IMG/VR virus record: IMGVR_UViG_3300046787_000408
Span: 1-64,000 of that record
Reading direction: 5' to 3' (one strand)
DNA length: 64,000 nt
The first letter of the stretch is position 1, and each line of letters opens with the position of its first letter. The notes below the pieces were generated by a model. The model was not told the origin of the DNA and searched no databases. It saw nothing but the letters and a program-made list of their open reading frames with translations. A program made the translations under genes and the position numbers. Below are positions 8,116 through 52,621 of the stretch, one piece after another.

Positions 8116-8490
8116 TTATACGTAGCTGGCTGTGCGTTGTTGTTGGTCGAAGAAGATGCTCAGTCTCTTGGCATCTGTTGTGGGCACTACAGTAAGTTGT
8201 ATCTGTAACAAGATACCGTTTTCCTGGGGGAATGCCTGCACCTGGCTTACAAATATTCTAGGATCGCCCCCAGCTACTCGTTGCACTTCTTGCTGGATTG
8301 ATGTTTGTGTTTCCTGTGTTTGTGGTTCAAACACAAAACTCCACAGTGTGGTACCATAGGCAGGGCGGCCAGGCAGTTGTCCTGGTCGAATGTTGAATGC
8401 ATTCAACAGATCTCGTTTGATCAGCTCAAAATCTGTTAGAGTAAACTTTTTGAATTGATTGATTGTGTTAAAGCCGATGAATGTAGACAT
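8116..8490 (-). CDS. Baseplate wedge subunit, gp25/GPW-like
   Basis: 124 aa; LIKRDLLNAFNIRPGQLPGRPAYGTTLWSFVFEP...DPRI is the gp25 pattern. Confidence 0.85.
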   Translation of the reverse strand: MSTFIGFNTINQFKKFTLTDFELIKRDLLNAFNIRPGQLPGRPAYGTTLWSFVFEPQTQETQTSIQQEVQRVAGGDPRIFVSQVQAFPQENGILLQIQLTVVPTTDAKRLSIFFDQQQRTASYV

Positions 8491-8495
8491 AACAA

Positions 8496-8501
8496 TATTT
8501 A
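8496..8501 (-). promoter_or_regulatory. Late promoter TAAATA, 5 nt before the ATG
   Basis: cgaTAAATAttgttATG; overlaps the stop codon of the upstream gene. Confidence 0.65.
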
Positions 8502-9899: not shown

Positions 9900-9902
9900 A
9901 AC

Positions 9903-11324
9903 TTAGACCTTGACACCTGTGTTGTGGAACGGATATGGCTCATGTGTGGGCGCTCGATTAACCACACTGGCTATTCCTTTGTCCACTGGCTTCCACCCGG
10001 TGCTAGCGTTAAATGTCACGTCAGGCATAAGGTTCATGGGAATTACAGGTGGCGTCGGAATCTTGGATGCTGCTGGTCCATTAAGATCAATAGTACCAGC
10101 ACTGGCCACAATAGAACTGCCACCGTTGATACTGGTGTTTTTGCCTTGCAAGCCCAAGGTACCGTCTGCCTTGAGTGCTAGCGTGGCGCGAGAATATACA
10201 GTCATACTTTTACGAGCCATCATGATTAAATCAGTCTCAGTTTCGACCTGCATGGCCTCTTTGCTTTTTACCTTGATGTTTTTGCCAGCGTACATGTTGA
10301 TACTGCCGTCAGCATGCAGATTCAAGTCACCTTGTGTGCGCACATTTACAGAATTACTGCTGTAAAGATCTATTGTGCCTTCACTGCCAAACTCCAGCCA
10401 GCTTTGTCCGTTGGCATGAATGATATAGAAAAAGTCTCCAGAATCACTCATGGTAATCTGATGACCTTTAGCAGTGCGTAGTCTGATCATTTGATCCTTG
10501 CCGTCTACAGACCCATCATCCATGACCAGAGTGTGACCACCTAGACGTCCAATTACTTTGGTATCAACAGGTGATATTGCTCCTTGATCAATACGACTTG
10601 GGATCTCTTCTTGCTTGAATCCACCTTGATAAATTGGTCGTCCTGGTGTGCTAATTCCAAACACTTGGCTAGGACTTTCGCGTTGACTACTGCTGGCCAC
10701 TGGTCCACGGGCAGTGTCAGTTATCAGTCCCTGTTGAAACATTGTGGCTGCTGCCACAGCATGTACCGGCTTAGGTTGGTCAAAGAATCTTGGATTGTTG
10801 ATAATACCGGCGTTGGCTGCATTGATCTCAGTTACCGGCAATTGTGCTGCATCAGCAAAATAGGCTTTTTGACTGGGATTGGCAGTATCTGCTGCTGTAC
10901 TTGCACCTATTGCTGGCACCATGTGCCCAAGGCCTTGCTCAGGCAATACGCCAATGTAGTAACCCTTGTCTCGCTCACCGTTGACAAAGATGCACATGAC
11001 TTTGACTCCAATGTCAGGCGGAGTAAACCACATGCCATATGTGTTACGGTTACCTGGGTATGTACCAACACCAGTGGTAGTACCTGCGTTTGCTGGAGTA
11101 GATCCAAAAAAGCTTGGCAAATATTCTACAGTGGTCCATTTGGTATCGTCGTCTTCTGCACCGTCTGAGAATGTTTCAATGTACACACGTAGTCTACCTG
11201 ATCTAGTGTTATCAACATTGCTCTTGACTTTGCCAATAAACGGACCTGGTTGAGCAGGTACTCCGCCTCGATCCGGTTTGTAGTTCTGTGGTGTGCCTTT
11301 ACTGCGTGCTATATTTTCTGACAT
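9903..11324 (-). CDS. Baseplate hub/central spike, gp5/VgrG-like (OB fold plus beta-helix)
   Basis: GKVKSNVDNTRSGRLRVYI...GMWFTPPDIGVKVMCIFVNG OB-fold motif; GHTLVMDD, GHQITMSD and short beta repeats; TIDLNG end. Confidence 0.85.
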   Translation of the reverse strand: MSENIARSKGTPQNYKPDRGGVPAQPGPFIGKVKSNVDNTRSGRLRVYIETFSDGAEDDDTKWTTVEYLPSFFGSTPANAGTTTGVGTYPGNRNTYGMWFTPPDIGVKVMCIFVNGERDKGYYIGVLPEQGLGHMVPAIGASTAADTANPSQKAYFADAAQLPVTEINAANAGIINNPRFFDQPKPVHAVAAATMFQQGLITDTARGPVASSSQRESPSQVFGISTPGRPIYQGGFKQEEIPSRIDQGAISPVDTKVIGRLGGHTLVMDDGSVDGKDQMIRLRTAKGHQITMSDSGDFFYIIHANGQSWLEFGSEGTIDLYSSNSVNVRTQGDLNLHADGSINMYAGKNIKVKSKEAMQVETETDLIMMARKSMTVYSRATLALKADGTLGLQGKNTSINGGSSIVASAGTIDLNGPAASKIPTPPVIPMNLMPDVTFNASTGWKPVDKGIASVVNRAPTHEPYPFHNTGVKV

Positions 11325-11332
11325 GAGCGTCC

Positions 11333-14300
11333 TTATGCCTCACCAGACATTTGCTGGCTAGGAGTATTTGTTATTTGATTTTGCGCATTCAGTACCCCAG
11401 GTGCTGGTAAGTTAACTGACTGCACTTCTGAACCGTTGCTGGTGGTTGGAGTTGTTGACTGGCGAATCAAATCCACTGCTGCGGTGGCACTAGCGGTGGC
11501 ACTACTGCCAGCAAGATTTACTACATCTAGCACAGGAGGGGCAGGCAATGCTCCTGCTCCTGGAATTACATTCTGAGCCATGCTGGTTAGTACCGAGCTA
11601 CGTTCTGCTAATCCACTGTCATTTGCTGCTACACTGGCTGTTTTGGCAGTAGCGGTGTTTTGTTGTGCTGGAACTGGGAACATGTATAATGATCCTTCAA
11701 CTGTTTGCTCAAATTTACCTTGACGGAATTCACTCACACATTTTTTTGCCAAATAAACATTGCTTTGTATTGCTTGTCGTGCCAAGTTTGCGTTTCCTGA
11801 ATATGCACCTGAGTACGGATCTGCTAGTCCTGTGTTGATGTTGTAGTCTTCAGGGCGCTGCCAGGCAATTTCAAACATCACTTGACTACTGTCAAAGTTG
11901 ATTGTACCATCTGGTAAAAATCCCTTGTAGTCAAAGTTGGTGGGATTGACTCCTGCTGCCACACTGCCTTGTTGTATCCAGGCTGGATCGCCCACAATAC
12001 GAACCTTGGTTGTTCCTTGTTCGCTAGGTGCGTACAAATATTCAGCTGCGTTTGCGGATGTTTCATTACCTTTGCCATCAGCACCAAAGTTGCTTTCTGA
12101 ACTTCGAGCTTGATACACATAGGTAGAAATATCTCGCATGCTAGAAGTAAACTTTCTTCTGATAGCTTCAGTACCTGAGTCTTTGCTGTCACTGCCAGTC
12201 ATGGTCATGTTGTAAAGATGATTGAAATTGGCCTGGTAATCCAGTACGTCTTTGTTTTCACCAGTGAACCAATACTTGTAGCTCTTGTGCAAGCCATTAA
12301 ACTTAGGTATAGGGAAATATTTGCTGTCAAGATTTACAACCACATACGGACTAATAATATAACGAATATCATATGCATAATCGTTGCGTTTGTAATCATA
12401 TTCGCTCACACGGGGCACAGCTTCCATGGTAATATTGAACCAGTTGATTTTGGCTGTTGGAGGTGAGGCTGTGGGAGTTTCTCCTGCCACATCGCCGCTG
12501 GTTGTTGTTTCTTCTTCTTCTTGATTGACCACTCTAGCTTGTTGCGTAATAAACGTGCTATTACGAATAGTCAAGTCAATAACTTGCAACAATTGCTGTC
12601 CTGCAGTCACGGCTGAATTTCTCAAGGTATTGTCAACTTGATTTTTTCGAGGATCAAGGCCACTAGGATCAGTAGTGGCCGGTTTGCCCATTGGAGTTGC
12701 TGCTAGATTTTTAATCTTGTTTTCTGGTTTGATGATAGACGAGTCTCTAATGCTTTCTGCACCGTTAACAAAGACTATTTCATATTGATCTGCATATTCG
12801 TACACACCGTCTTGAACTAATTTTTTCTGAAAATCGTTCATTGCACCCATGAGGCCTTGACGGATAGTAGGTTTGTTTGACGGAGCTGCATTGGCCTTTT
12901 GTGGAGCTGTAGGATTGGTTGTTGGTGTTTCACTAGGTGACGCTGTTCCATACTGAGTGTCACCAGTTAACAATCCGCCCACAGTGCTGTCAGTTAATTC
13001 TATATCATAAGGAATGGTGCCACGGCTTTGTCCACCAGCTATCAACTGACCCACAGGCTTACATACAAAATCGTATGTGACCAGTTTGTTGTGAACGCCC
13101 CAGTTAATTGTTTGTATTTTAAAAGGAATAAATTTTTCAATTGCAGCGTTGGGATCAGTTAGACCTTGAGTTTGACCAACTCCACGTATGAGCTGTCCGT
13201 CAAGATCCCATCCATACCAACGAATGGCCAACAAGTACTGCACTGCGGTGTAGTTTACTTTGCCTGCTCCGTCCTTGGGCACAAAATCTTGCACTGCTGC
13301 ATACATCCTATCCAGCAAGGTAATACCATTGGGCTCAACCACTGTGAATTTTAATTCACTAGCCATGTGAGCCGCACCAGTTTGTTTGCCAGGAAATGCA
13401 TTTTCCAAAGTCAAACTGTCAATATAAAAATCTACATCAAAATAAGGATTGCGTCCTGCATCTCCTGGCTCAAGAGAAGTCATGCCACCAGGGGATTGAG
13501 ACCCACCAACCGGAGCTCCGCCACTTTGAAACAACAGATTACTGCCGTTGAGAGTGCGCTTTTTACTAGTTATCATGGATTTGTATGCTTCTGGAGTCAT
13601 CAAGTACACAGATATACCATATGTGTAGCTAGCAAACTGATCTAGCACATTGTCTTGTGGTTTGATCTGTTGCGGTTCATTGGCTGCATTGTTTGTGGCA
13701 GCGCTGGTGGACTGTGATGTTTCAAATGGATTATCGTCCTGAGCGCCGTTACCAACTGTAACAGCCGGAGCAGCGCCGCCGGCAGTGCCCTGTTGCGATG
13801 GATCAGTAACTTTGCCTTCGCCATTGGGCTGTTCAGTACCTGGTGGATATTCTGGTTGTTTTGGCGCTGATATTGTACCGGCGCCAGTTTGCTCTTGCTC
13901 GTTAGACGATGACTGAGTAGTTGAAAAAGTTTTTTGCGGCCCGTTGGTGTTGATGTCTGCATCGCCAGCGGCAGTGGTTGGTACCTGATCAGCATTAGAC
14001 GGTACAGTCTCAGGCACAAAGTTTTGTATGCGTCCTGTATCAGGGTTGGTTTCTAACGGTTGCTGCTTGATCGGGTTTGGAACTGCGTCATCGCCAACAG
14101 TTTGTCCCGCTGTTTTTGGTGGAGGTGGCACGACCCCACCTTCACTAGCAACTTTTTGTTGTGCTTGAACCAGCTCTTGTCTTAGAGCTGCCAGACGTGC
14201 TTCAGCACGTTGAAGATTGGTTTGAGCCGTGGCACGCTGAATTGGGCGTAAGTTAGGATCTTCAAGTCGTTCTCGAAAAGCAGCAATATCTGCAAGGGTG

Positions 14301-14353
14301 ACATTGATATCAACTTGTATGCGAACAACTTCGCTTTGGGCTGTGGTACTCAT
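11333..14353 (-). CDS. Large baseplate hub protein (gp27/gpD-like by position), with a disordered N-terminal region
   Basis: 1006 aa between the gp53-like and gp5-like genes; KVRIVGDPAWI and YLAKKCVSEFRQGKFEQTVEG resemble hub C-terminal motifs. Confidence 0.55.
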   Translation of the reverse strand: MSTTAQSEVVRIQVDINVTLADIAAFRERLEDPNLRPIQRATAQTNLQRAEARLAALRQELVQAQQKVASEGGVVPPPPKTAGQTVGDDAVPNPIKQQPLETNPDTGRIQNFVPETVPSNADQVPTTAAGDADINTNGPQKTFSTTQSSSNEQEQTGAGTISAPKQPEYPPGTEQPNGEGKVTDPSQQGTAGGAAPAVTVGNGAQDDNPFETSQSTSAATNNAANEPQQIKPQDNVLDQFASYTYGISVYLMTPEAYKSMITSKKRTLNGSNLLFQSGGAPVGGSQSPGGMTSLEPGDAGRNPYFDVDFYIDSLTLENAFPGKQTGAAHMASELKFTVVEPNGITLLDRMYAAVQDFVPKDGAGKVNYTAVQYLLAIRWYGWDLDGQLIRGVGQTQGLTDPNAAIEKFIPFKIQTINWGVHNKLVTYDFVCKPVGQLIAGGQSRGTIPYDIELTDSTVGGLLTGDTQYGTASPSETPTTNPTAPQKANAAPSNKPTIRQGLMGAMNDFQKKLVQDGVYEYADQYEIVFVNGAESIRDSSIIKPENKIKNLAATPMGKPATTDPSGLDPRKNQVDNTLRNSAVTAGQQLLQVIDLTIRNSTFITQQARVVNQEEEETTTSGDVAGETPTASPPTAKINWFNITMEAVPRVSEYDYKRNDYAYDIRYIISPYVVVNLDSKYFPIPKFNGLHKSYKYWFTGENKDVLDYQANFNHLYNMTMTGSDSKDSGTEAIRRKFTSSMRDISTYVYQARSSESNFGADGKGNETSANAAEYLYAPSEQGTTKVRIVGDPAWIQQGSVAAGVNPTNFDYKGFLPDGTINFDSSQVMFEIAWQRPEDYNINTGLADPYSGAYSGNANLARQAIQSNVYLAKKCVSEFRQGKFEQTVEGSLYMFPVPAQQNTATAKTASVAANDSGLAERSSVLTSMAQNVIPGAGALPAPPVLDVVNLAGSSATASATAAVDLIRQSTTPTTSNGSEVQSVNLPAPGVLNAQNQITNTPSQQMSGEA

Positions 14354-14356
14354 TTA

Positions 14357-14656
14357 TTAGAATCCCAGTGTTTCTTGCAGAGTTGATAACTTGGGCAAAT
14401 ATATTTTCTTTCCTGCCACAAAGTCCAAAGGTGGGGCAGTCAAAGTGTTGGGATTACGTTGATAAAACACCCACCATAAATTAGAATTTTGATAAAGGTC
14501 AAATGCCAACAGATCAGGACGATACTGATAAGTTTGATTGATCACAAATGACAAGTCGTCTGTGAGTCTAGGTATAGGTCTATCCACCATGACATCCAAA
14601 AAGAACTGACTGTAGCCAGTTGCATAGTATGGACTGGTTGCTCCGTATGTGGCCAT
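14357..14656 (-). CDS. Baseplate wedge gp53-like (LysM-like) protein
   Basis: YRPDLLAFDLYQNSNLWWVF...N...GKKIYLP. Confidence 0.85.
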   Translation of the reverse strand: MATYGATSPYYATGYSQFFLDVMVDRPIPRLTDDLSFVINQTYQYRPDLLAFDLYQNSNLWWVFYQRNPNTLTAPPLDFVAGKKIYLPKLSTLQETLGF

Positions 14657-17529
14657 TACCAGAACCCTCCTTTGAGCAAGCTGCCGTTAGCAAACTCTTT
14701 GACACTGAACTGTTGACTAACTTGACTGCGTGTGTTGGTAGGCAACAGTGTGATGCTGATTTCTATCTTGGTTGGCACGTAAGTGGCTCCTGTTAGATTG
14801 TCGACGTTTTGAGTTATAGAACCAGGTGTTGGGGAACTAGGCTCAGCGCCTTTGGGCACTCCGGCTGCGGTCAACCGACTCAATGCAGCACTTAACGGAT
14901 TGGTACTGATACCACCTGTTTTGGCTCGTTGGCTAAACAGGTTCCCGTAGTTGTTCGGACCCCATGCTCGTATATAGTCAACTTCGTTGGGCAAGCTGTA
15001 ACTAAAGTTGGATACCAAGCAAGGATGTTCGTTAAATTGGTATTCGCCAAACCCGCTGAGATATACCAAAGGAGGTGGTGCACCACGCAAGGCATCTTGG
15101 CCATAGAACATGCGTGTTACAGATCTAAAAAAGTGTATCACGGCCAGCATGTATTCTGCTTCAGCAGTGTCTTGAGCAGTAAAGGTGCCACGAATATTGA
15201 TGTCGTTGACCACACTGTTCTTGTAGAAATATCCACGATAGTTGCTGTGAACTAAATCGTACTTGTCATAGTTGGCAGCATAGGATGTTTCAATAGTTGG
15301 AGTGTAGGGAAACACTACCCCGTCTGTTTGAAACAGTGGTGCCAGTATACCTGGCTCAGGATCTTTGTAGAGATACTGTGCGCCAGGTGCCAGTTGCAAT
15401 CGTACACGCCAGTCTGGTGCAGCAGCTTCATTGTTTCGCGCCTCCAGTGTTGCTTGTTCTTTGGCTTTTTGTATAGTGGCATTTTGCCTTGACAGCAAGT
15501 CTGTTACTGCACCCAAGCCGCTGGCCTGTACCAAACTGTCTACAGTATCAGTTACAAATCCTGTTAGATTGTCAGGAATTCTTTCAGGTAAACTTCTAAT
15601 ACCGGCCACTAACGAATTGGCAGTGTCTTCAGCTTGTTGTGCCAGTCCAGCAACCTGAGCCGCAGTAAGTTGCAATGCACCAGTAACAGACGGAAGTGCT
15701 GGCAATGCAGCAGTAAATCCGGCTGCAAAGCCTGTAGCAATACCTGCTAGGTCAGTGGGCACAGATGGAACAGACGATAATACATTGTTGACTGCACCAG
15801 TTACTACACCAGTTGCTCCTGCTAGGTTAGTAGGTACTCCAGCGTTTGATGCAACTGATGAAAAAGACGCATTAGCAAATCCTGCTGAGTTAACAAGACC
15901 TGTTACTGCAACCACAGTGGCGCCGTTGGCAGATAACCCTGTTGAGCCACTTGAACCTGGACCAGCTACTAGACCAGCAGCGGCATCATTGATAGCAGCT
16001 TGTCTAGCTGCTTCGGTAGGATTGGTGGCGTTTAACGCCCAGCTTTGAAAAGTGGCTTCGTCCCAACCGTTTTCAGCTTTGAGTTGATTTTTAACATTAA
16101 CATCGGTAAGAGCTGCACTGGCAATACCATATGCTTCCTTGTTGCTGCCTTGATATGCTGGCCAATTTGGATCGTTCCAAGGTGCAATGGTGCTGCCCGG
16201 AGGTGTTACTCCATTTTGACTAAACAGTGCTGTTCGATCGTCTGCGCGATTAATTTGATTTTGTGCCTGCGCAACCAGTTTTGGATCAGCATAAGGGTCG
16301 GAGATACCTTGCCGAGCCCAGGTTTCTCTAACTAATCCCCCGTTATTGGGATCGTACTGTGATCCTTGCCACTGAATAAATCTAGCTGTTTCAGAGTTAG
16401 CATCAACTACTATGCTGCCTTCAGAAGTAGATACAGTTCTAGCCACTTCAGGCAGCGCTGTTATTGTCACAGTTCTAAACGGAGTGTCTACAGTAGTAGT
16501 ACCGTACGTGGGCACACTGATATCTATAGCTACTGGTGGTTTTGAGTTGCCTTCAAAGTAAGCGGTGATGTCAATATTTCTACCATTTTCTAGTGTAATA
16601 TAAACTTGGCCAGTGTTTGGATCACTAACAGTAGGAATTGCAGCATCTGGCGGAAATCCATTGGCGATAGCTGCTCTTCGAATATCATCGCGAGCCTCTT
16701 GTCTTGAAAGTTGTTCGGCCCGAATAAATTCAGTAGTGCCTCGATAAAACTGAGGATTTCCGCTGGCATTCAGTGTTCCTGGTTCTACTTGCGAAGGTGA
16801 ATTCGTAATACGATTTAACTGAGCAATTTCTTGAACAGCTTCTGGAGGGAGAAAATACGTACCGTCGGAGGCCCGGCTGTAGCGACCAACTGCACCAGTA
16901 GCACCTTCAATTCTAGCAATGTCCTCAACGGTCATGTTTTTGCCGCCATACAATTCAACTGCTAGTTTTTCCCAGGCTTGGTTTCCGTTCTTGACATTGC
17001 TTAGATCAACATTTCGAATTTCAGGATCTAGTGCAACTTCACGCCGGGTCGCAAAAGGATCACGAGCAGCATCTGCATATGAAAACTGGACTGGCGAATA
17101 ATAATCAGGTGCTGTTGGAAGGGGAGTGGGATTAAACCCGTACTCTTCTTTCCAGACTGCTCCAACTTCAGGAATAATGTTTGCAATTTCATTAAGATTG
17201 CTGTTGGAGCGAATGGTATAATCTTTTCTATCAGTACCAGAAATAAAATTTGCTTTATCTTCGCTGTAGCGATATATTACGCCGCCTGCAAAGTCGGTAT
17301 AAGAACCCACTGGAGCGTTTTTCCAGTAACTATCGTAGTCAGCTGCAATGCTCACCTGTGGCGGAGAAGCAACTACACCAGTATTGGTTACTGTTGGCAA
17401 CGGTGCTGGCACTGGAGCAGGTGCAGCAGATTCTACCCGAGGTGGGGGTGGTGGTGGCGGAGCGGGTACAGGATCGTCTTCCCAGACTGTAAATGAGTTT
17501 TCTCCAGTTCCTACGGTGATGTATGCCAT
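14656..17529 (-). CDS. Tail-tube initiator/baseplate cap (gp48/gp54-like) C-terminal domain with a ~700 aa N-terminal extension
   Basis: C-terminal VFPYTPTI...INIRGTFTAQ...HFFRS...GAPPPLVYLSGFG...PCLVSNFSYSLP...PTKIEISITL tube-like fold; immediately upstream of the gp53-like gene. Confidence 0.65.
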   Translation of the reverse strand: MAYITVGTGENSFTVWEDDPVPAPPPPPPPRVESAAPAPVPAPLPTVTNTGVVASPPQVSIAADYDSYWKNAPVGSYTDFAGGVIYRYSEDKANFISGTDRKDYTIRSNSNLNEIANIIPEVGAVWKEEYGFNPTPLPTAPDYYSPVQFSYADAARDPFATRREVALDPEIRNVDLSNVKNGNQAWEKLAVELYGGKNMTVEDIARIEGATGAVGRYSRASDGTYFLPPEAVQEIAQLNRITNSPSQVEPGTLNASGNPQFYRGTTEFIRAEQLSRQEARDDIRRAAIANGFPPDAAIPTVSDPNTGQVYITLENGRNIDITAYFEGNSKPPVAIDISVPTYGTTTVDTPFRTVTITALPEVARTVSTSEGSIVVDANSETARFIQWQGSQYDPNNGGLVRETWARQGISDPYADPKLVAQAQNQINRADDRTALFSQNGVTPPGSTIAPWNDPNWPAYQGSNKEAYGIASAALTDVNVKNQLKAENGWDEATFQSWALNATNPTEAARQAAINDAAAGLVAGPGSSGSTGLSANGATVVAVTGLVNSAGFANASFSSVASNAGVPTNLAGATGVVTGAVNNVLSSVPSVPTDLAGIATGFAAGFTAALPALPSVTGALQLTAAQVAGLAQQAEDTANSLVAGIRSLPERIPDNLTGFVTDTVDSLVQASGLGAVTDLLSRQNATIQKAKEQATLEARNNEAAAPDWRVRLQLAPGAQYLYKDPEPGILAPLFQTDGVVFPYTPTIETSYAANYDKYDLVHSNYRGYFYKNSVVNDINIRGTFTAQDTAEAEYMLAVIHFFRSVTRMFYGQDALRGAPPPLVYLSGFGEYQFNEHPCLVSNFSYSLPNEVDYIRAWGPNNYGNLFSQRAKTGGISTNPLSAALSRLTAAGVPKGAEPSSPTPGSITQNVDNLTGATYVPTKIEISITLLPTNTRSQVSQQFSVKEFANGSLLKGGFW

Positions 17530-20291: not shown

Positions 20292-21300
20292 TCTATTTAA
20301 AAAAGCCGCAATCTTTACCGACATCCACTTTGGCTTGAAGTCAAACTCAGTTCTTCACAACGAGGACTGTTTGGCGTTTGTCAAGTGGGCAACTGCCAAA
20401 GCAAAAGAGGAAGGTTGTGAAACCTGTTTGTTCTTGGGCGATTGGCACAACAATCGATCAACTATTAACATTGTCACACTCAACTACAGCTTACAATCCC
20501 TGGAGCACCTAAATGAGCATTTTGAACGTGTTTATTTTATTCCTGGTAACCATGATCTATATTATCGCGATAAACGTGACATTCAAAGCGTGGAGTTTGC
20601 AAAGCACCTCCCTAATGTTCAAATCTGTAATGATTGGTTCAGCGACGGTAATGTCACTATTGCCCCTTGGCTATGTGGAGACGATCATAAACGCCTGGCC
20701 AAACTAAAAGGCGATTACTTGTTTGGGCACTTTGAGCTGCCCGGTTATTTGATGAACGCAATGGTGGAGATGCCAGATCATGGGGAACTGCAACGAGATA
20801 GTCTTGGGGGATTTGGTCATGTGTTCACTGGGCACTTCCACAAGCGACAGACTAAAAAGAACATTACCTATATCGGTAATGCGTTCCCTCACAATTATGC
20901 AGACGCTGGTGACGACGAAAGAGGTCTCACTGTGTTGGAGTGGGGAAGAGCGCCTGAATTTCATGCTTGGCCTGCTCAACCAACATATCGTGTATATGGA
21001 CTCGCCAACCTTATTGACAACGCTGCAACACTTCTTAAGCCCAAAATGCATGTTAGAGTGAACCTAGATATTGAGATCAGTTACGAAGAAGCTAACTTTA
21101 TCAAGGAAACGTTTGTGCGGGACTACAATCTACGTGAGATGGCCCTGATTCCCAACAAGTCTGCAGGAGTAGATGAAGACATGGCACCTGGTGAAGTCAA
21201 GTTTGAATCAGTAGATCAGATTGTTACAGACCAGCTCACAAACATCGAATCTGAATTTTACGACAATAAACTCTTGCTCAAGATTTATCAAACATTATGA
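20284..21300 (+). CDS. gp47: Recombination endonuclease subunit (gp47/SbcD/Mre11)
   Basis: Metallophosphoesterase motifs TDIHFG, LGDWH, GNHD, GHF, GHFHK. Confidence 0.95.
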   Translation: MSNLFKKAAIFTDIHFGLKSNSVLHNEDCLAFVKWATAKAKEEGCETCLFLGDWHNNRSTINIVTLNYSLQSLEHLNEHFERVYFIPGNHDLYYRDKRDIQSVEFAKHLPNVQICNDWFSDGNVTIAPWLCGDDHKRLAKLKGDYLFGHFELPGYLMNAMVEMPDHGELQRDSLGGFGHVFTGHFHKRQTKKNITYIGNAFPHNYADAGDDERGLTVLEWGRAPEFHAWPAQPTYRVYGLANLIDNAATLLKPKMHVRVNLDIEISYEEANFIKETFVRDYNLREMALIPNKSAGVDEDMAPGEVKFESVDQIVTDQLTNIESEFYDNKLLLKIYQTL

Positions 21301-22694
21301 TTGTTTCATTGAATGCAATTTCTAAAAATTTTAGACTCTTCAATAATGATGAGTGGCTTTCACGCGATCTACTAACTGAATTTGTTGATCATTGGAAACT
21401 GATTTTTGTTGAAAAAAATCAGTTAAAAGCTGGAGATAAAATAGGTCTAGGATTTGCACTCACTGACATATATTATTTCGGCGCACTTATTGCTGCTGCA
21501 GAACTTGGACTCAAGTTGGTTGTGCTCGATGTGTCGTCAACAAAAAACGCAACCTCTGAATATTTTTTCCCCCTTGATCTTTTTGTGTCTGGTCCCATGT
21601 TGTCACCTGACAAACATCAGTATTACAGTACAGTCAGTTTACAAACTGAATTTTGGCATGTATGGGACAATTACACTACTACGTCTGACGGTTGGTGGGA
21701 TCATTCAACTAGATCTAGTATAGACCAGGATCTTGCGCTATTGTCATGCACTAGCTCAGGAACTACCAATCGTCCAAAAAAAGTTGAGCATAGTCACAAA
21801 TTTATATTCAACATATCTAAAAGAAATTGTAATCTGTTGAAATTCCGGGGCAATGTAATGCATATTAGAAATTTGCATCATGGCAGCAGTATTGCAACGT
21901 ACTTCCTTCCTTCACTAATGTCTGATGAGTGCACCGGACACTATGTTTTCAATGTAGAATCCCAATATCAAACAGCAGACCTGGTTCGGTACTGTGCTGA
22001 TCACGATATCAATCATATACAATTTCCATATGTAAATTTTGCTGAACAATTTTTAAAACAGGCAGTTTTACAAAATATCAAGTTCAATGATCTTACAATA
22101 TATGTACTATCATACATCAATCCGGCCTGGCAATCATTGATCCGACAGTGCGGCTTGGTAAAAATTGTCAGTATATTTGGTTGCAACGAAACTAGTGGGC
22201 CTTTGTTTACTAACAGTCTACAATCGAATCAGGTAGAGTTTGATTGCAAAATTTTTGTGGCCCTTGATGACTTTTATCAATTTGATTTTAATCAGCAAGA
22301 TCAACTAGTAGTGCATATCAATGACTACAACACATCTATTGTGATGCAGGATTCTTTCAGTCGGAACAATAATGTTTTTACCCACCATGGCCGCAATGAT
22401 CTTGTACGAATCAATGATGTTGAGGTTGATCTGTTTTGGATTTTGGATCTAGCAAAGAACGAACAGATCAATGCACAAATTGTACTAGACCGAGATCGGG
22501 AAAAACTATATCTAGCTGTTTGGGATCAAACTGACTTACAGTCAGTAACTGATCAGCTAAACGATAAGATTATTGATCGTTACAGCAACAAAGTAGTTAT
22601 TAGTTCTGCTATGCACTTAACCATGGACGAGTGTAGCTACGGAATCAAATTAGACCATGAAATCATACGAAATATTTTTCGAAAAAACATATGA
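21297..22694 (+). CDS. Adenylate-forming (ANL/AMP-binding) enzyme-like protein
   Basis: CTSSGTTNRPKKV P-loop, IFGCNETSG, D...HHGRNDLVRIND and C-terminal GIKLD; AT-richer than its neighbours. Confidence 0.75.
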   Translation: MIVSLNAISKNFRLFNNDEWLSRDLLTEFVDHWKLIFVEKNQLKAGDKIGLGFALTDIYYFGALIAAAELGLKLVVLDVSSTKNATSEYFFPLDLFVSGPMLSPDKHQYYSTVSLQTEFWHVWDNYTTTSDGWWDHSTRSSIDQDLALLSCTSSGTTNRPKKVEHSHKFIFNISKRNCNLLKFRGNVMHIRNLHHGSSIATYFLPSLMSDECTGHYVFNVESQYQTADLVRYCADHDINHIQFPYVNFAEQFLKQAVLQNIKFNDLTIYVLSYINPAWQSLIRQCGLVKIVSIFGCNETSGPLFTNSLQSNQVEFDCKIFVALDDFYQFDFNQQDQLVVHINDYNTSIVMQDSFSRNNNVFTHHGRNDLVRINDVEVDLFWILDLAKNEQINAQIVLDRDREKLYLAVWDQTDLQSVTDQLNDKIIDRYSNKVVISSAMHLTMDECSYGIKLDHEIIRNIFRKNI

Positions 22695-22939
22695 AAAAAC
22701 ATCAACACTTGTATAACAGCAACGAAAGCTACAAATCACATTTGGTATGGGCAATAACTTCAGGTGTCCAGCTGATATGGGCTGGCATCATGAGTCTGCT
22801 TCATGCAATTTATCCTGGCTGGTTCCCGTTTGGCGCTGCAAAAACAGTCATTGACTTATATTACAAAAGACTGCATAATCATGTTAATGACGATTATCAA
22901 CGCTATATCCAACAAGTTAAAAATCAAAAGAAATCATGA
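22691..22939 (+). CDS. Small hydrophobic protein (resembles DUF6356 as recalled)
   Basis: HL...NESYKSHL..A...G......LLHAIYP pattern; ATGA-coupled on both sides. Confidence 0.6.
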   Translation: MKKHQHLYNSNESYKSHLVWAITSGVQLIWAGIMSLLHAIYPGWFPFGAAKTVIDLYYKRLHNHVNDDYQRYIQQVKNQKKS

Positions 22940-25559: not shown

Positions 25560-25995
25560 GGCAGTTTCGGCCCGCACAAGCCAATATCGTGTGCCCTAGA
25601 CCTGGATCACGGATCACAGGGATGGAAGTCTTGCCGCGCCAGCAAGCACTCAATCAGTATCCTTGACAGGACCACGATCGCTAATTGCTGCGGTTTGATT
25701 GTTTGAAGATGAATAAAAGCTAAAAAGACGCTACCGTGGGGTAGCAGGTTGGCACAGTATGTTAGCGTATGTTGTGTCAATTGCCGTTGTGATAAAGACA
25801 ACACTCGAGGTACCGGACAACCGCCTCTGTAATGTGTTAACGCTAAGTGACTTGCCCGACTCGGATGAAGTTTCTTTGCCCTGTGCGGGCAAAGTGTGAC
25901 CATAAGATCTGGATGAATACTTAGTCGCTTCGCTCTTGAGCTAACAGTATGTGTGAGCGATAGCGAAACACTGATGTGCGTAGCACATCAAAACA
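25560..25995 (+). ncRNA. Candidate large structured non-coding RNA (strand inferred)
   Basis: About 440 bp gap in a gene-dense genome containing at least nine stem-loops, e.g. GCTACC/GGTAGC 25730-25745, CTTTGCCC/GGGCAAAG 25874-25894, TGATGTGC/GCACATCA 25972-25990. Confidence 0.55.
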
Positions 25996-25998: not shown

Positions 25999-26373
25999 TT
26001 AATATATTTTCTCTTCTACTATATCACTGTTTGTGATTTGATTGATTTGGCGTTTGATTGCAGCTCTTTGATCGTTCTTGATATACACAGCCCTTGCCAA
26101 AGCAATGAAATCACTGTCAAATTGTTGACGTTGTTCGTGTTGCCTTTTGGCATCTTCAATATTCCACAGTTCTTGGTTTATTGCGTGTAGCTGTATGGTT
26201 TGTTGTGAGATGTCTTGGCTCAATGCCAACTGATTGAGAGTGCTGTTGAGCTGGGTTAACTCAACAGAAACATTGTGTGTTTGTGTGGGTGTGCGGGCAT
26301 GAGCCAATTTTATCTGCAAGATTGTTATCTTGTCAATCAACTCGCCTACACTAACCGGGACATGCACTATCAT
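25999..26373 (-). CDS. Conserved small helical protein (resembles DUF6165 as recalled)
   Basis: VPVSVGELIDKITILQIK...INQELWNIED...FIALARAVYIKNDQRAAIKRQIN...SDIVEEK. Confidence 0.7.
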   Translation of the reverse strand: MIVHVPVSVGELIDKITILQIKLAHARTPTQTHNVSVELTQLNSTLNQLALSQDISQQTIQLHAINQELWNIEDAKRQHEQRQQFDSDFIALARAVYIKNDQRAAIKRQINQITNSDIVEEKIY

Positions 26374-26711
26374 AGATTTTGATCAGGCCAGTCTCTAAAC
26401 AGTGCATGTTGAATAGTTGAGCAATCCACGAACTGATTAAAGCTCTTGTGTTTGTCTTCTAGTTCACCTTCAAGTGGTGCTACTCGTTTGAATGCCGAAT
26501 CCATCTGAGCCATTCCTGTAAACTCCATGAGTATCATCCATTCTGGCATGTCTGCGATTGAACGAAAGCCCATTTTACAGCGTGTGATTCTGTAGCTTTC
26601 CATTTTGCCTTCTGATATCAAGTGATCAAAAAAGCTTTTCATGTTTGTGACCCATTCAAGGTCTGAAATGTCGCCGGCCTTGTTGGCCCAAATTGTATAT
26701 ACGTCTGCCAT
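26370..26711 (-). CDS. Small alpha/beta protein (resembles DUF6614 as recalled)
   Basis: 113 aa, coupled in the operon; SYRITRCKMGF...PEWMILMEF...QMDSAF. Confidence 0.6.
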   Translation of the reverse strand: MADVYTIWANKAGDISDLEWVTNMKSFFDHLISEGKMESYRITRCKMGFRSIADMPEWMILMEFTGMAQMDSAFKRVAPLEGELEDKHKSFNQFVDCSTIQHALFRDWPDQNL

Positions 26712-26714
26712 GTT

Positions 26715-27149
26715 TTACTCCAGTGGTCCCAGTAGTTCAAAGCCATCCATGCTTTGTTTGTACAGGTGTGCTTGTTCAAGATACAGGTATTGGAACCCGC
26801 GAGCCTTGTAGATAGCACACTCTGTTTGTAGTGTCTCTATCCCTAGCCGTAGCCGGGGATTGTTGTAGTTCCATGCGAATTGATCACACAGTGCATTCTT
26901 TTCGTCGTAGCGTCGGATCAAGCTGAACGCTGCTAGTTTGTCCCCGTCGTAATACCCTATTACGTCAGTCATTGGGTCTGTATAACGACTGTCAAATATA
27001 GGCATCACACTGGCAAAATGTTTGTATTTGCAGTAGTCTCTGTAGATGCTGTTCAGCTGAGTGATATTGGGTTCACGCAAGTACTCCCATTTTACCGTGG
27101 GTTTGTAGTTGGTTTTTGACAAATCAATACGTGCGAACTGGTAAGTCAT
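26715..27149 (-). CDS. Arginyl/leucyl-tRNA-protein transferase (ATE1/Bpt) C-terminal-domain-like GNAT protein
   Basis: IYRDYCKYKH...YYDGDKLAAFS...RLGIETLQTE...KARGFQYLYL...YK follows the ATE_C pattern (LY.RY...H; LG...L; G..YLYL; YK). Confidence 0.65.
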   Translation of the reverse strand: MTYQFARIDLSKTNYKPTVKWEYLREPNITQLNSIYRDYCKYKHFASVMPIFDSRYTDPMTDVIGYYDGDKLAAFSLIRRYDEKNALCDQFAWNYNNPRLRLGIETLQTECAIYKARGFQYLYLEQAHLYKQSMDGFELLGPLE

Positions 27150-27646
27150 CTAGGATCCTTTCTGTGGTGAAACAGCACTTTTAAGTAATCTTCTGGCCAA
27201 GTATCGTAGAATCCTTTGCGTGCCATACCTGCTGCTCGTTGATTAAGATCCTCAAGTGGCTGCACCAGAGCCAGTGCATATTTGCCTTGGTTCATTACAA
27301 TGCCATTGACTATTTCAGGATCTGCAGGATGATCTTCCAGCGCAATCAAGTCGTTGTGGTGCAAGAACTCTTGATTGGCTTGTTCAAGACTGCTAGAGAA
27401 CAATTCGTAATTCCATTCTGCAGGATCGTAGGCATATATTATTACTTCGTGCGAGCCCATGCCATGCTGACTGCGATGCTTTAGATCATAGTAAGGATCG
27501 GACCCTACAAAGATACCTATGGTGTTCTTGAGTCTTGCTGATCTTGCAAACGGGCATGGTGGCCATCCGCCTAGCGCAGGATGCGGCTTTTCCACAAAGT
27601 TTTCGCTCCATTCCAGGATGTCTCGGCGTAGTTGTTCTAGTTCCAT
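27146..27646 (-). CDS. DUF1415-like protein (CPFA motif)
   Basis: W..NFVE.P......PCPFAR and DHP motif; TAATG and ATGA coupling to its neighbours. Confidence 0.55.
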   Translation of the reverse strand: MELEQLRRDILEWSENFVEKPHPALGGWPPCPFARSARLKNTIGIFVGSDPYYDLKHRSQHGMGSHEVIIYAYDPAEWNYELFSSSLEQANQEFLHHNDLIALEDHPADPEIVNGIVMNQGKYALALVQPLEDLNQRAAGMARKGFYDTWPEDYLKVLFHHRKDPR

Positions 27647-27882
27647 TAAAAGAAAGGCAATTTGCTTGATTTAGTTGTTTCTAAGTTTTCCTTGATCAAT
27701 TCACTGATCAAGGTTCGTTCAGACGGACTCATTTGCATAACATCGTCATAGGTGGCGCCGCCTCGCATGTACCATGACATTTTCAAACTCTGCCTACGCA
27801 TTTCGTTGGCCTCCTGGTCCATCTGATCGATTAGTGCTGAAATTTCGTCAGCAGACGCTGTCAGGAGGCGGCTTCGAAAAAA
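27646..27882 (-). CDS. gp51-like assembly chaperone domain, probably expressed as a -1 frameshift extension of the upstream gene
   Basis: WYMRGGATYDDVMQMSPSERTLISELIKEN; frame open through the upstream gene's end; no clear RBS before the first ATG; slippery T TTT TTC at 27882-27876. Confidence 0.6.
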   Translation of the reverse strand, partial: FFRSRLLTASADEISALIDQMDQEANEMRRQSLKMSWYMRGGATYDDVMQMSPSERTLISELIKENLETTKSSKLPFF

Positions 27883-28703
27883 CTTGCTTGGTCCAGAGTC
27901 AAGGGTTGATCGTACTCGTGTTCGCAATTGTTGCATTTTAAGTGCAAGGGCTTGAGTTCACTAGCAGTGCGCAGTTCAATCACGTGATCGCGAATTACGT
28001 TGAACAGCTTACGATCACAGTTGTTCAAAAACTCTTGAATAAATTCAGGTTCAACCACAACAGTGTTGGGAGTTCTAATGCCAGCAATACTGTGCTTGAG
28101 TGCTTGTACAGTAAGCTCAGTAATTTTACGCAGAGCTTGATTCAACTTGGTTAGTTTTTCTTCGTCGGACAGATCGCTACCGGGAATCTGTTGAATGATT
28201 CGTTGTTCTTCAAATTGAGTTTGATTGGTGTCTGTTTGATTTTTGTAGGTAATGGGTCTGAAAAAGATCTCCATGTCCCCATGACGAATAGTTTTGCTAA
28301 AGTCAGGACTGTCCAGCTGTGCCAGTACAGTGCGCAGATCCAGTTGATATTCTTCATCAGTTTTACATGCAGGACACTGAGTGCTAAAACCCATTTCGTG
28401 CCCATAACTGGCAATACGAATGGCTACCAAAATAGCATTGATGTCCACAGCAGGAGCAGCCCAGGCATTGAGCACGTTGGGCAAACAGCTTTGGATCACA
28501 TTGATCACAGCTTGTCCGTTGAACAGTGCGTCTGGAGTACGGTACGTGATCTCGTCAATGGCTGTCATGGGCAGCACAGGTAGTTCTTTATTTTCAGGCA
28601 TGCTGATAGCATCCTGATGCCAGAATTCTCCACGAGTGGGCAGGGTCAAATAGATTGCCGGTTGTCTAAAGAATTGTCGCAATGGGTTAGCTAATTGGGT
28701 CAT
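27861..28703 (-). CDS. Baseplate hub/tail assembly chaperone, T4 gp26-like
   Basis: P.IYLTLP, LPMTAIDE, DINAILVAIRIASYG, two CxxC pairs (CPAC, CNNC), C-terminal SFF. Confidence 0.75.
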   Translation of the reverse strand: MTQLANPLRQFFRQPAIYLTLPTRGEFWHQDAISMPENKELPVLPMTAIDEITYRTPDALFNGQAVINVIQSCLPNVLNAWAAPAVDINAILVAIRIASYGHEMGFSTQCPACKTDEEYQLDLRTVLAQLDSPDFSKTIRHGDMEIFFRPITYKNQTDTNQTQFEEQRIIQQIPGSDLSDEEKLTKLNQALRKITELTVQALKHSIAGIRTPNTVVVEPEFIQEFLNNCDRKLFNVIRDHVIELRTASELKPLHLKCNNCEHEYDQPLTLDQASFFEAAS

Positions 28704-41694: not shown

Positions 41695-44499
41695 ATGTCT
41701 ACCTACAAGCGTGTTAACGGCGATTATACAATTCAAACACTTGGTGCAAACACCATCACCTTTGCAGGTAACGTTGCTAACGCAGTCACAGTTGTGGTGG
41801 ACGGTAATTTCACAGTAACTGGCAACGCTACTTTGACTGGTAATATTTCCGGCGACAAACTGTTTAACGGAACAACGTCAATTGAAATCCCCGCAGCCAA
41901 CGGCAACGCTAATGTAACAGTAGGTGGCACATCTAACGTAGCAGTGTTTACCACAACAGGCCTTAACATCAGTGGGGTAGCCAGCGTAAGTGGCAACATT
42001 GTTGGCGGCAATCTTAACACAGCTGGCCTGGTGTCAGCTACTGGTAACATCAATGGTGGGAACGTTAACACCGCAGGTAATGTAACTATCACACGTGATG
42101 CTAGTGTGAGTCAACCAACAATACGATTTGCAGACACAGACACTACTGGTACCGCAGGCACAGTGCTAGGCGCAGTTGAATGGTTTACTAGTGATGTTAC
42201 CGCTGCAGGCGTGACCGCAGCAATTAGAGCAACACTGGTTGACACTGGCGGAAACAGTAACGTACAAATTTTAACAGGAACTCCGGGTAGTCTTGCAGCC
42301 AGAGTTACTGTATTGCATACAGGAAATGTGGGTGTTGCTAACGCAGCCCCAGACACCACAATAGGAGTTACTGGTACAGCGTACATAAGTGGTAACACCA
42401 CAGTTGCAGCCAATATTTCAGGTGGCAACATTTCCACAGCTGGATTAATCGCAGCAACAGGCAATATCACTGGTGGTAATATCAACACTGCTGGCCTGGT
42501 AACAGCTACTGGTAACATTACTGGTGGCAACATTATTACAGCAGGCACAATTTCTGCTGGTGCAGCTGGAATAACAGCCACTGGCAATATTCGTGGCGGC
42601 AACTTGGTAAGTGACGCTGCAATTACTGCTACAGGTAGCATTGCGTCAGGCGCTAGTATAACAGCCCAAGATCAAATCAGCGCACAAGGCAACGTGATTG
42701 CTAACAACATCAGTGCTGGTAACATTATCAATACTGGTATTCTAAATGCCACCAGTAACGTTAGCGCAACTGGCAACGTTACTGGATCAAATTTGGTAAC
42801 TGGTGGCGCAGTTACAGCAGTAGGTGCAGTCACAGGCGGAAGTATCACTACAGGCGGATTGATAACTGCTACAGGCAACATTACAACCAGCGCATTTTTT
42901 GTAGGCGATGGTGGATTTTTATCCAACGTTACGGCTATCTCAAACGTTACCACAAGCCAGATTACTAACGGTACCACAGTAATGGCCGTTGCAGGCCCCA
43001 ATGGCAATATTTTTGCTACAGTCAATGCTGTGGGAAATATTTTGGTATTGTCTGACACTGGTGCTTTTGTTACTGGCACATTGTCAGCAACTGGAAACGT
43101 AACTGGTGCCAATGTTAATACTGCAGGATTGGTCAGCGCAACAGGAAACGTCAATGGTGGAAACGTTAATGGTGGCATTGGTAACTTTACCACTGTGATT
43201 GGTGCAGCAAATGCATCCAGTTTGACATCAGGTACTGTGTCAGCTGACCGACTAAGTGGCAGTTATGTGATCAACGTTACTGGTAACGTGAGTGGTACAG
43301 CCGCTACAGTAACCAATGGTGCTCAAGCCAACATTACTTCAGTAGGCACATTGACTTCTTTGAGTGTGAGTGGCAACATCAACACTGGAGGGGTATTCAG
43401 CGCAACTGGTAATATCACTGGTGGAAACGTCAGCACTGGCGCATTGAGTTTGAGCGGCAATGTACTAAGTGCAATCAACACTACTAGTGCAATTACTACC
43501 ACAGCCAATATCACTGGTGGCAACATCTTGGGCGGTGCCAATGTAAACGCTACCACTCATACAGGTACTACAGTAAGTGTTACTGGAAATATCACTGGTG
43601 GCAACTTGATTACCGCTGGGCTTGTGAGTGCAGGTACAACAATTAGTGCTACTGGCAACATTACCGGTGGTAACTTGATTACTGCAGGATTGATTACGGC
43701 AACTGGTAACATCAGTGCAACTGCTAACATATCAGGCGGCAATATTAGAACAACAGGTACAACTAATACTGTTGGCTTGATTGCTAGTGGTACAATTAGC
43801 GCTAGTGGTTCAATTAGTGGAGCTGACCTACTTTTGGTTGACGGTGTTGCAAACATTGGCGGTTTCATAATTGATAGTAGTGCAACACCTACTGGGCCAA
43901 CCTTTATGTCTGGGCCTGGTGGTAACCTTGAGATTGTTGGGAATGTTTCTGCTGATCGACTTACTTCTGCGGGTAACATCACTGGCGGCAATTTAATCAC
44001 CAGTGGTACTACAGGCATTTTGAGTGTTAACAGTATCACTCACACTGGCACAAATGCAGTGGGTAATATTGGTAGTGCCAGCAGTTATTTCAACCAGGTG
44101 TTTGCCACAGCTACCACTGCACTTTATGCTGACTTGGCAGAAAAATATGCAGCAGACGCTGATTATGAACCAGGTACTGTGGTAAGTTTTGGCGGCACAG
44201 CAGAAGTCACCGCCAGCGTAGTCAGTGCTGATCGAAAAATTGCTGGTGTAGTATCTGCTAACCCTAGCTATTTGATGAACGCTGGACTTGAGTCAGCACA
44301 TACTGTTGTGGTTGCACTGCAAGGTCGTGTGCCATGCAAGGTGGTTGGTACAGTTCAAAAAGGCGATATGATGATATCAGCTGGCAACGGCCGAGCACAA
44401 GCCTGTGAAAACCCACTAGTGGGATCTGTGATTGGTAAAGCCCTGGAAAACTTTGATGGTGTTGAAGGCACAATTGAAGTTGTAGTAGGCAGAATCTAA
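41695..44499 (+). CDS. Tail fibre-like protein with TGNITGGN repeats and a C-terminal intramolecular-chaperone-like domain
   Basis: Many ATGNITGGNI repeats; C-terminal ADLAEKY...YEPGTVV...GVVS..P...VALQGRVPCKV...IGKALE. Confidence 0.8.
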   Translation: MSTYKRVNGDYTIQTLGANTITFAGNVANAVTVVVDGNFTVTGNATLTGNISGDKLFNGTTSIEIPAANGNANVTVGGTSNVAVFTTTGLNISGVASVSGNIVGGNLNTAGLVSATGNINGGNVNTAGNVTITRDASVSQPTIRFADTDTTGTAGTVLGAVEWFTSDVTAAGVTAAIRATLVDTGGNSNVQILTGTPGSLAARVTVLHTGNVGVANAAPDTTIGVTGTAYISGNTTVAANISGGNISTAGLIAATGNITGGNINTAGLVTATGNITGGNIITAGTISAGAAGITATGNIRGGNLVSDAAITATGSIASGASITAQDQISAQGNVIANNISAGNIINTGILNATSNVSATGNVTGSNLVTGGAVTAVGAVTGGSITTGGLITATGNITTSAFFVGDGGFLSNVTAISNVTTSQITNGTTVMAVAGPNGNIFATVNAVGNILVLSDTGAFVTGTLSATGNVTGANVNTAGLVSATGNVNGGNVNGGIGNFTTVIGAANASSLTSGTVSADRLSGSYVINVTGNVSGTAATVTNGAQANITSVGTLTSLSVSGNINTGGVFSATGNITGGNVSTGALSLSGNVLSAINTTSAITTTANITGGNILGGANVNATTHTGTTVSVTGNITGGNLITAGLVSAGTTISATGNITGGNLITAGLITATGNISATANISGGNIRTTGTTNTVGLIASGTISASGSISGADLLLVDGVANIGGFIIDSSATPTGPTFMSGPGGNLEIVGNVSADRLTSAGNITGGNLITSGTTGILSVNSITHTGTNAVGNIGSASSYFNQVFATATTALYADLAEKYAADADYEPGTVVSFGGTAEVTASVVSADRKIAGVVSANPSYLMNAGLESAHTVVVALQGRVPCKVVGTVQKGDMMISAGNGRAQACENPLVGSVIGKALENFDGVEGTIEVVVGRI

Positions 44500-44553
44500 T
44501 CTTTTGACACCGTAAGCGCAGTTTTTGCTGAATTAGTAGATAAAGTCTTTTGG

Positions 44554-44559
44554 TAAATA
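44554..44559 (+). promoter_or_regulatory. Late promoter
   Basis: ggTAAATAc followed by GAGGA RBS. Confidence 0.65.
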
Positions 44560-44581
44560 CAACCAGAGGACTTGAATCTAC

Positions 44582-45202: not shown

Positions 45203-45223
45203 TAAGATTAAAGGACTGAATAA

Positions 45224-52615: not shown

Positions 52616-52621
52616 AACGAA

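Follow-up and report, generated by a model that had tools for sequence, protein, structure and literature searches.

A phage gene pair joining an ATE1-type catalytic core to a predicted thiolate-haem protein in uncultured jumbo phages

What might a phage do with the catalytic half of an ATE1/Bpt-type aminoacyl-tRNA transferase? The question is raised by a short run of minus-strand genes in the IMG/VR virus record IMGVR_UViG_3300046787_000408 (hereafter G000), a linear record of 299,983 bp with a CheckV completeness of 81%, of which the first 64 kb make up the stretch of DNA analysed here (the window). Two of these genes are our main subject: gene A (27146..27646, minus strand, 166 aa), whose product carries PPCPFA at residues 29-34 and is a distant relative of the DUF6875, DUF1415 and YqcI/YcgG proteins, and gene B (26715..27149, minus strand, 144 aa), whose product corresponds to the ATE1/Bpt-type catalytic GNAT core without the N-terminal domain ATE_N. 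The answer that we favour, tentatively and with rather less than even confidence, is a tRNA-dependent and probably arginyl transfer by B that is coupled to haem-dependent oxygenation by A and that acts on a non-canonical acceptor of the arginine or guanidino type.

An initial annotation, made from the DNA letters alone, had described B as an ATE_C-like protein lacking the usual N-terminal domain, and this description held. The assignment is made because the relatives of B and its family profile match ATE_C; B itself matches no Pfam family at E <= 1 and hence stays under the ATE_C gathering score. Relatives that are about 50% identical to B pass the Pfam ATE_C model (PF04377, cut-off 25), including P0241 (33.5 bits), P0329, P0347 and others with scores in the range of 25.5-35 bits. 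A profile built from 54 family members (A1) matched only ATE1 chains in the PDB (7wfx, 7wg1, 8e3s, 7tif, and 8j6v; E 1.7e-7 to 3e-7), and the neighbours of B in the ESM-Atlas are viral ATE_C clusters. An exhaustive search for B returned 132 representatives, which comprise short forms of 140–150 aa and long forms of 225–268 aa with an N-terminal extension. As judged from these homologies, B is a true ATE1/Bpt homologue by descent that has been cut to the catalytic GNAT core. One representative of the family, P0285 (963 aa), matches B in 14 separate stretches, a pattern that may reflect a repeat protein or else an assembly artefact made up of a QFAW...LG segment.

Residues of the tRNA end, the aminoacyl pocket, and catalysis in Kluyveromyces lactis Ate1 are largely kept in the B family. 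Positions were mapped through a HMMER alignment to K. lactis Ate1 (klAte1), in which the chain index equals the native number + 4, and their roles were taken from the mutational data of PMC9351520. At the tRNA end, klAte1 Trp260 corresponds to W93 of B (conserved in 53 of the 54 family members) and Tyr303 to Y130 (49/54), while Lys304, the FemX-like catalytic lysine, corresponds to K131 (50/54) and Gly270 to G103, which is found in all 54. In the aminoacyl pocket, Ser273 is replaced by T106 (Ser or Thr in 40/54), and Glu277, which is essential for arginine and has a Gln (Gln189) as its counterpart in Bpt, is retained as E110 (Glu in 50/54). At the arginine-pocket position, E110 makes the aligned B family Ate1-like and not Bpt-like.

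The AlphaFold2 model of B, with a predicted local distance difference test score (pLDDT) of 94.8, shows a single GNAT domain spanning the 144 aa. In the structural comparison that the initial annotation had called for, the best Foldseek matches were MprF C-domains, tandem GNATs, ATE1, and the tRNA-dependent peptide synthases Sbb17/Sba18, all of them matched through their second lobes. In the two-lobed enzymes, B superposes solely on the second lobe (residues 640–838 in MprF and 135–386 in FemX). B begins at the boundary between ATE_N and ATE_C, and Pfam searches detected ATE_N neither in B nor in the long forms; across the whole 300-kb record, the best match to ATE_N had an E of 0.03 and fell within a 42-aa frame. 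The pocket by which klAte1 reads an N-terminal Asp or Glu, formed by Arg80, Tyr25, and Tyr87, is located in ATE_N (PMC9351520). This pocket is absent from B, and the acceptor should therefore not be the classical one. By its domain composition, B falls outside the two-domain definition of the ATE family, and a classical acceptor would be unreadable to it in the classical way.

Loci encoding B are abundant and appear to be confined to viruses in the data searched. Their B proteins form over 2,800 clusters at 90% identity, none of which stems from any cultured phage; searches of cultured phages with the proteins B and C (the product of the next gene downstream) and with the DNA of the 4-kb region also gave no match. 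Genome scans found B solely on phage-like contigs that had been binned into Bacteroidota metagenome-assembled genomes (MAGs), and 13 of 400 other Bacteroidota genomes gave weak matches to B (E 1e-8 to 3e-4) in longer open reading frames (ORFs). Two of the contigs, NZ_JBBAKG010000003.1 and NZ_JBBAKG010000001.1 (148 and 183 kb; loci L098 and L099), carry the full gp26-s96-A-B-C-SegE-gp46 block. They are phage contigs binned with the Bacteroidota genome of a “Haliscomenobacter sp.” MAG, and they represent either a weak hint at the host or MAG contamination. No description of a phage ATE_C protein was found in the literature searched.

Protein A is best read as a divergent member of a new haem-thiolate fold class, a reading for which we draw on remote sequence similarity and on predicted structures and from which we infer haem binding. 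DUF6875 (PF21780) was described in December 2025 as “cytochrome P422,” a group of thiolate-ligated haem enzymes that hydroxylate tryptophan and whose axial Cys lies in the motif RxGxVCP (bioRxiv 10.64898/2025.12.11.692455). AglA belongs to the YqcI/YcgG thiolate-haem enzymes and has a “sandwich” fold; it catalyses the N-hydroxylation of the arginine in AMPn-Arg, with Cys44 as its ligand (PMC12866846). The match of A to PF21780 scores 19.2 bits where the cut-off is 24.5 and spans residues 8–47, the stretch that holds PPCPFA, and 17 of 18 members of the A family match it below threshold as well (best E 1.1e-4). The AlphaFold2 model of A (pLDDT 90.5) has the alpha/beta sandwich fold of the YqcI/YcgG enzymes, and it resembles ESM-Atlas predicted structures of clusters that carry DUF6875 or DUF1415 with a TM-score of about 0.8. 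In the PDB, the sequence profile of A found no match and Foldseek with the A model returned nothing below an E of 0.01; the exhaustive structural aligner alone found AglA. A second profile search with A recovered close relatives only, with no gain of distant ones. A scan of 401 Bacteroidota genomes gave no DUF6875 match, but at a threshold that no control reached either, so that this negative carries no weight.

Within the A family, Cys31-Pro32 in GGWPPCP[FY]A, Asp105-His106-Pro107 of LEDHP, and a few aromatic residues are invariant, and Glu104 is nearly so. When compared with the RxGxVCP motif of P422, A keeps the Cys-Pro, in the same stretch that is covered by the PF21780 match, and lacks the Arg and the Val. 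The tryptophan-binding motifs of P422, namely Rx(M/L)x3Dx2F, Dx2(Q/H)x3K, and MxGxF, were not present in A when its sequence was read by eye, the sole near-match being M118-x-x-G121-x-Y123, and the substrate of A should therefore differ from that of P422. In cultured phages, A has distant matches in HMO-2011, cyanophages, and roseophages, where no B lies nearby.

Gene neighbourhoods were compared across 80 related IMG/VR loci ranked by their match to B. A was found in 78 of these loci, B in all 80, and C in 79, and a gp26-like gene lies upstream of A-B-C in 75 of them; the order gp26-like, s96 (a small ORF), A, B, C is near-invariant, and most junctions within the module are overlaps or gaps of at most 9 nt. 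The median identity to the window proteins is 85% for B, a figure inflated by the ranking, 85% for C (75 relatives), which is free of this bias, and 84% for the SegE-like protein, and it is lower for A (64%) and for the gp46-like (61%), gp26-like (58%), and s96 (55%) proteins. Some relatives carry inserts of ~1.1–1.2 kb at the A/B or the B/C junction (the latter in L021, L031, L065, L077, L091, and L092; an example is L017 3775-5000), possibly mobile elements that interrupt the module.

Overlapping starts and stops are commonplace in phages, and the signal that goes beyond chance is the adjacency of A and B, which recurs in at least five unrelated phage contexts; a check of neighbourhood conservation, proposed in the initial annotation as a way of probing the cluster, thus came out in favour of this pair. 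Besides the gp26 clade, where A-B occurs in the 78 loci already mentioned, the pair is found in L006/L007, where A and B share 38% and 50% identity with their window counterparts, in L010 and L107, directly after ribonucleotide reductase genes, in L011-L014, where a long-form B has its own N-terminal extension and A is convergent, and in L100, where the two genes are again adjacent. In the four contexts other than gp26, A-B lies away from structural genes. The more distant long-form B proteins (32–34% identical) have no A nearby. One of them, a 254-aa ATE_C protein that is 34% identical to B, is encoded on a phage-like contig with DNA polymerase III alpha and RNase T genes (L108 3225-5765, and likewise L109), directly after a 499-aa ClpA-like Clp_N+AAA protein and a 69-aa ORF; the latter was considered as a candidate ClpS and was not convincing. 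Another long-form relative lies among glycosyltransferases (L110/L111).

Structure prediction of an A+B complex gave a median score of 0.49 (0.44, 0.49, and 0.59 in the single runs), with all three controls at 0.00; the runs agree in at least 86% of their contacts, and the pLDDT of the partners is at least 83. In a calibration of this score without ligand and without the alignments used for A+B (the A+B job included a haem, which was not scored), 58 of 80 solved complexes passed, as did 2 of 110 mismatched pairs; among these passes, only 7 of the solved complexes but both of the mismatched pairs scored 0.60 or less. The predicted complex is rated as weak support. Together with the recurrent adjacency and the translational coupling of the two genes, it leads us to regard the functional link between A and B as real, as far as gene order and models can indicate. 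The conserved unit, as read from gene order, is A-B, joined by C in this clade and by an amidinotransferase elsewhere.

This amidinotransferase gene, E (330–375 aa), flanks A-B in L100, L010, L011, and L006. A profile of E (A6) matched arginine:glycine amidinotransferase (AGAT; 2jdx/1jdw) in the PDB with an E of 2e-20 to 5e-20, followed by HsvA (2.5e-18), SxtG (1e-17), and StrB1 (2e-13), and the catalytic motifs PRD and GG.HC are kept in all five copies examined. All five large relatives of G000 that were examined encode E in one to several copies each. G000 itself has an E homologue at 216625-217689 (plus strand) and a weaker paralogue at 157496-158407 (plus strand); immediately upstream of the 216-kb copy is a gene for a TctC-like solute receptor.

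From these elements, we propose that A and B form a two-enzyme unit. B would act as an aminoacyl-tRNA-dependent transferase, with its GNAT core binding the 3′ end of the tRNA together with the aminoacyl group, and Arg-tRNA would be the likeliest donor, since the pocket of B keeps the Glu that Ate1 needs for arginine. A would be a P422/AglA-like thiolate-haem monooxygenase that oxidises, and most likely hydroxylates, either the acceptor before the transfer or the aminoacylated product after it. The outcome would be that an arginine- or guanidino-containing compound, most likely a small molecule or a short peptide and not a protein N-terminus, is built or modified. The AGAT-like amidinotransferase beside A-B in other phages makes a pathway for an arginine or guanidino compound the most likely one, and Glu110 of B, the predicted AglA-like fold of A, and the amidinotransferase itself are three independent hints of chemistry of this kind.

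Several points weigh against this proposal. To our knowledge, no characterised ATE_C-family enzyme acts beyond protein N-termini, and the ClpS and ClpP proteins of the phage fit a rival reading in which B marks proteins for N-degron proteolysis. Protein A stays under the Pfam cut-off and, on alignment, is devoid of the P422 tryptophan-binding motifs and of most of RxGxVCP, and its Cys31 and His106 could equally bind a metal. In G000, E is located 190 kb from A-B, and the neighbour of B is instead the DUF6614 gene C. The score of the modelled complex lies in a range in which, without a good prior, a pass is wrong in the majority of cases.

Among known systems, a precedent for the proposed pair is the argolaphos cluster, in which a YqcI/YcgG haem hydroxylase that acts on AMPn-Arg occurs together with GNAT aminoacyl-tRNA ligases (PMC8976061, PMC12866846). 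Argolaphos biosynthesis (AlpF/AlpO and AglA) and A-B, whose roles are predicted, would have in common a tRNA-dependent GNAT, a thiolate-haem hydroxylase of the same fold class, and an arginine theme; in contrast to B, the argolaphos GNATs are Acetyltransf_6/FemX-like and not ATE_C, and they belong to an actinomycete cluster with phosphonate genes. ATE1 and Bpt share with B a homologous GNAT core, the Trp, Gly, and Tyr-Lys at the tRNA-end and catalytic positions, and the Glu at the position of Ate1 Glu277. They differ in being ~235–520 aa long compared with 144 aa, and B has no ATE_N, no Cys/metal cluster, and no Asp/Glu pocket, is phage-borne, and is paired with a predicted haem protein. The MprF C-domain, FemX, and Sbb17/Sba18, like the L/F-transferase, each consist of two fused GNAT lobes that shape the donor and acceptor sites, whereas B represents the second lobe only and showed no sequence-level match to them. 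With 166 aa, A is smaller than the P422 (DUF6875) and YqcI/YcgG (AglA) proteins (180–300 aa), and it keeps only the Cys-Pro of RxGxVCP. The eukaryotic Cys branch of the Arg/N-degron pathway, in which PCO or ADO acts before ATE1, also combines an oxygen-dependent enzyme with an ATE-type transferase; this is a conceptual analogy only, as PCO and ADO, which use non-haem iron, share no ancestry with A.

That eukaryotic branch leads to the N-degron alternative, the main rival to our reading, which we consider rather unlikely. Here, B would add a destabilising residue from aminoacyl-tRNA to protein N-termini, which would then be delivered by ClpS to the Clp protease of the phage or the host, and A would either prepare or select the N-terminus by oxidation, much like the cysteine oxidases that precede ATE1 in eukaryotes, or supply the missing acceptor lobe. 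The only characterised relatives of B, ATE1 and Bpt, are indeed protein N-terminal transferases (PMC9351520). The region of G000 at 152113-167558 encodes an Hsp20, a ClpS adaptor (ORF 153166-153621, 88 bits), and two ClpP-like proteases (at 163.8 and 166.9 kb), and three of the five large relatives also have ClpS, among them the two with a completeness of at least 98%. The phage ClpS retains the N-D-x...H core of E. coli ClpS. The location of the distant long-form ATE_C directly after a ClpA-like gene in L108/L109 and the weak pass of the A-B complex prediction would also agree with such tagging. However, the Asp/Glu pocket belongs to ATE_N, a domain that neither B nor any other part of the record contains, and the recurrent third neighbour, an arginine amidinotransferase, has no place in this scheme. 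Bacterial ClpS is not known to read N-terminal Arg directly, which would tell against this scheme if the donor is arginine. ClpS is, moreover, also found in PA5oct-like phages and in Phosso, which are without B. As a trait common to the whole jumbo lineage, its co-presence with B says little, and ClpS as a specific partner of B is weakened as a candidate. The Cys-containing neighbour had been suggested in the initial annotation as a split-off partner of B: the link to B stands, through the coupling of the genes, the recurrent adjacency, and the weak complex score, and the role of A as a replacement for ATE_N was rejected, given that A is not ATE_N-like, has a P422/YqcI-type fold with Cys-Pro, pairs also with a long-form B that has an extension of its own, and occurs without B in cultured marine phages.

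Two further alternatives concern the chemistry of B. It could be independent of tRNA, as an acyl-CoA-using GNAT or as a non-catalytic binding or structural subunit with a GNAT fold, its ATE descent then being no guide to its present chemistry, and the facts that B is a single GNAT domain, when all known aminoacyl-tRNA transferases of the superfamily are two-lobed, and that B itself has no Pfam match lean in this direction. We nevertheless find it improbable: the sequence homology points specifically to ATE_C, not to the Acetyltransf families, at least 49 of the 54 members retain the FemX-like Lys and the residues by which Ate1 holds the aminoacyl group and the tRNA end, and the median identity of B (85% compared with 55–64% for neighbours, a figure biased by the ranking of loci by B) speaks for a constrained, active protein. 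Even less probable, to the point of being a marginal option, is that B aminoacylates a component of the envelope or virion (a lipid, a peptidoglycan precursor, a glycan, or a baseplate protein), as MprF and FemX do with their substrates, which would account for its location by a baseplate gene. The module does follow the gp26-like hub gene in this clade, and the relative among glycosyltransferases would suit a role of this kind, but the sequence affinity of B lies with ATE_C rather than with LPG_synthase_C or FemAB, B lacks a membrane segment, and the pair keeps no company with structural genes elsewhere. The coupled arginyl transfer and haem oxygenation outlined above remains the reading that we favour.

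The two genes downstream of B are of different standing. C (26370..26711, minus strand, 113 aa) belongs to DUF6614 (PF20319, 2e-20) and is a highly conserved neighbour downstream of B in this phage clade only: it is still 81% identical in L106, where B is only 46% identical, and it is absent beside B outside the gp26 clade. A DUF6614-like phage ORF has been listed with anti-Druantia activity (preprint 10.1101/2024.04.14.589459). D (25999..26373, minus strand, 124 aa) belongs to DUF6165 (PF19662, 2e-11) and is probably a variable accessory gene that is not part of the module; a PNP_UDP_1 gene occupies its position in other relatives, and a homologue that is 46% identical adjoins a glycosyltransferase in Synechococcus phage S-SRM01. 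PDB searches with C and D gave no significant match (best E ~0.1, to a coproheme decarboxylase for C), and NCBIfam and PADLOC searches with A–D returned nothing meaningful. The initial annotation had seen in A–D a four-gene operon located behind tail chaperone genes. The four minus-strand ORFs and their tight junctions were confirmed by the coordinates, with a 1-nt overlap between s96 and A (TAATG), a 4-nt overlap between A and B (ATGA), a 3-nt gap between B and C, and a 4-nt overlap between C and D (ATGA). As a conserved unit of four genes, the operon was not upheld, as D occurs in merely 2 of the 80 loci and neither C nor D is a consistent member outside this clade, and the supposed chaperone genes proved to be a gp26-like baseplate hub gene and a small ORF. 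The former (27861..28703, minus strand; PF12322 T4_baseplate, 9.9e-14; phrog_150 baseplate hub, 1e-15) is a constant upstream context that lies outside the module. The latter, s96 (27646..27936, minus strand, 96 aa), has no family match and starts later in relatives, which gives 62 aa; its 76-nt out-of-frame overlap with the gp26-like ORF (window 27861-27936, minus strand) disappears with the start used in the relatives.

By its gene content, the source of the window is an uncultured jumbo phage with the makeup of a T4-superfamily myovirus. T4-type genes in the record include those for a gp47-like phosphoesterase, a gp46-like ATPase, a SegE-like GIY-YIG protein, the gp26-like baseplate hub, a 983-aa hub/tape-measure-like protein, the gp20 portal, and a prohead protease, and the portal is nearest to those of the jumbo phages Phosso, Atu_ph07, and PA5oct (49–52%). 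Within the 440-nt gap that separates the SegE-like gene from D lies a strong match to the Polynucleobacter-1 RNA motif (RF01718; window 25569-25704, plus strand; 112.5 bits compared with a gathering score of 37), a hint that the setting is fresh water and that this orphan motif stems from phages. A 465-aa protein (window 21297-22939, plus strand) with a weak AMP-binding/adenylation match that stays under the cut-off (PF00501, 2.9e-6) is inserted, together with an 82-aa DUF6356 protein, between the gp47-like and gp46-like recombination genes, and relatives have radical-SAM/SPASM genes in this neighbourhood instead. Two runs of giant ORFs, at window 41695-61148 (plus strand; 2463, 1321, 1273, and 934 aa) and 3-17529 (minus strand; 1496, 1189, 1006, and 957 aa, the last without a Pfam match), are presumably tail-fibre or structural genes. 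Elsewhere in G000, the 152–167 kb region also encodes a UvdE endonuclease, a UDP-glucose dehydrogenase-like protein, and a radical-SAM protein, and a cluster of 38 tRNA genes (282057-297281) includes four for tRNA-Arg (TCT, ACG, TCG, and CCT).

Known ATE and Bpt enzymes are exclusively cellular, two-domain transferases that act on protein N-termini, whereas here the catalytic core alone has become fixed in an abundant clade of uncultured jumbo phages, next to a partner that appears to belong to a class of thiolate-haem enzymes recognised only in 2025. The proteins of the module are all small and soluble-looking. In a bolder extension, which we put forward with little confidence, A and B may be a widespread and purely viral pair that uses charged tRNA outside translation and, with the amidinotransferase, makes an N-oxygenated compound of the arginine or guanidino type during infection, for example a hydroxyguanidine-like antimetabolite, or else an oxidation-gated N-degron system that resembles the eukaryotic Cys/Arg branch and feeds the phage ClpS. 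With the antimetabolite in mind, it may be noted that in two of the contexts the pair directly follows ribonucleotide reductase genes. If the pair is active, it would represent a new acceptor class or a new, oxidation-gated mode of tRNA-dependent aminoacyl transfer, and it would provide the first function for the viral DUF6875-like proteins, which marine and freshwater phages commonly encode.

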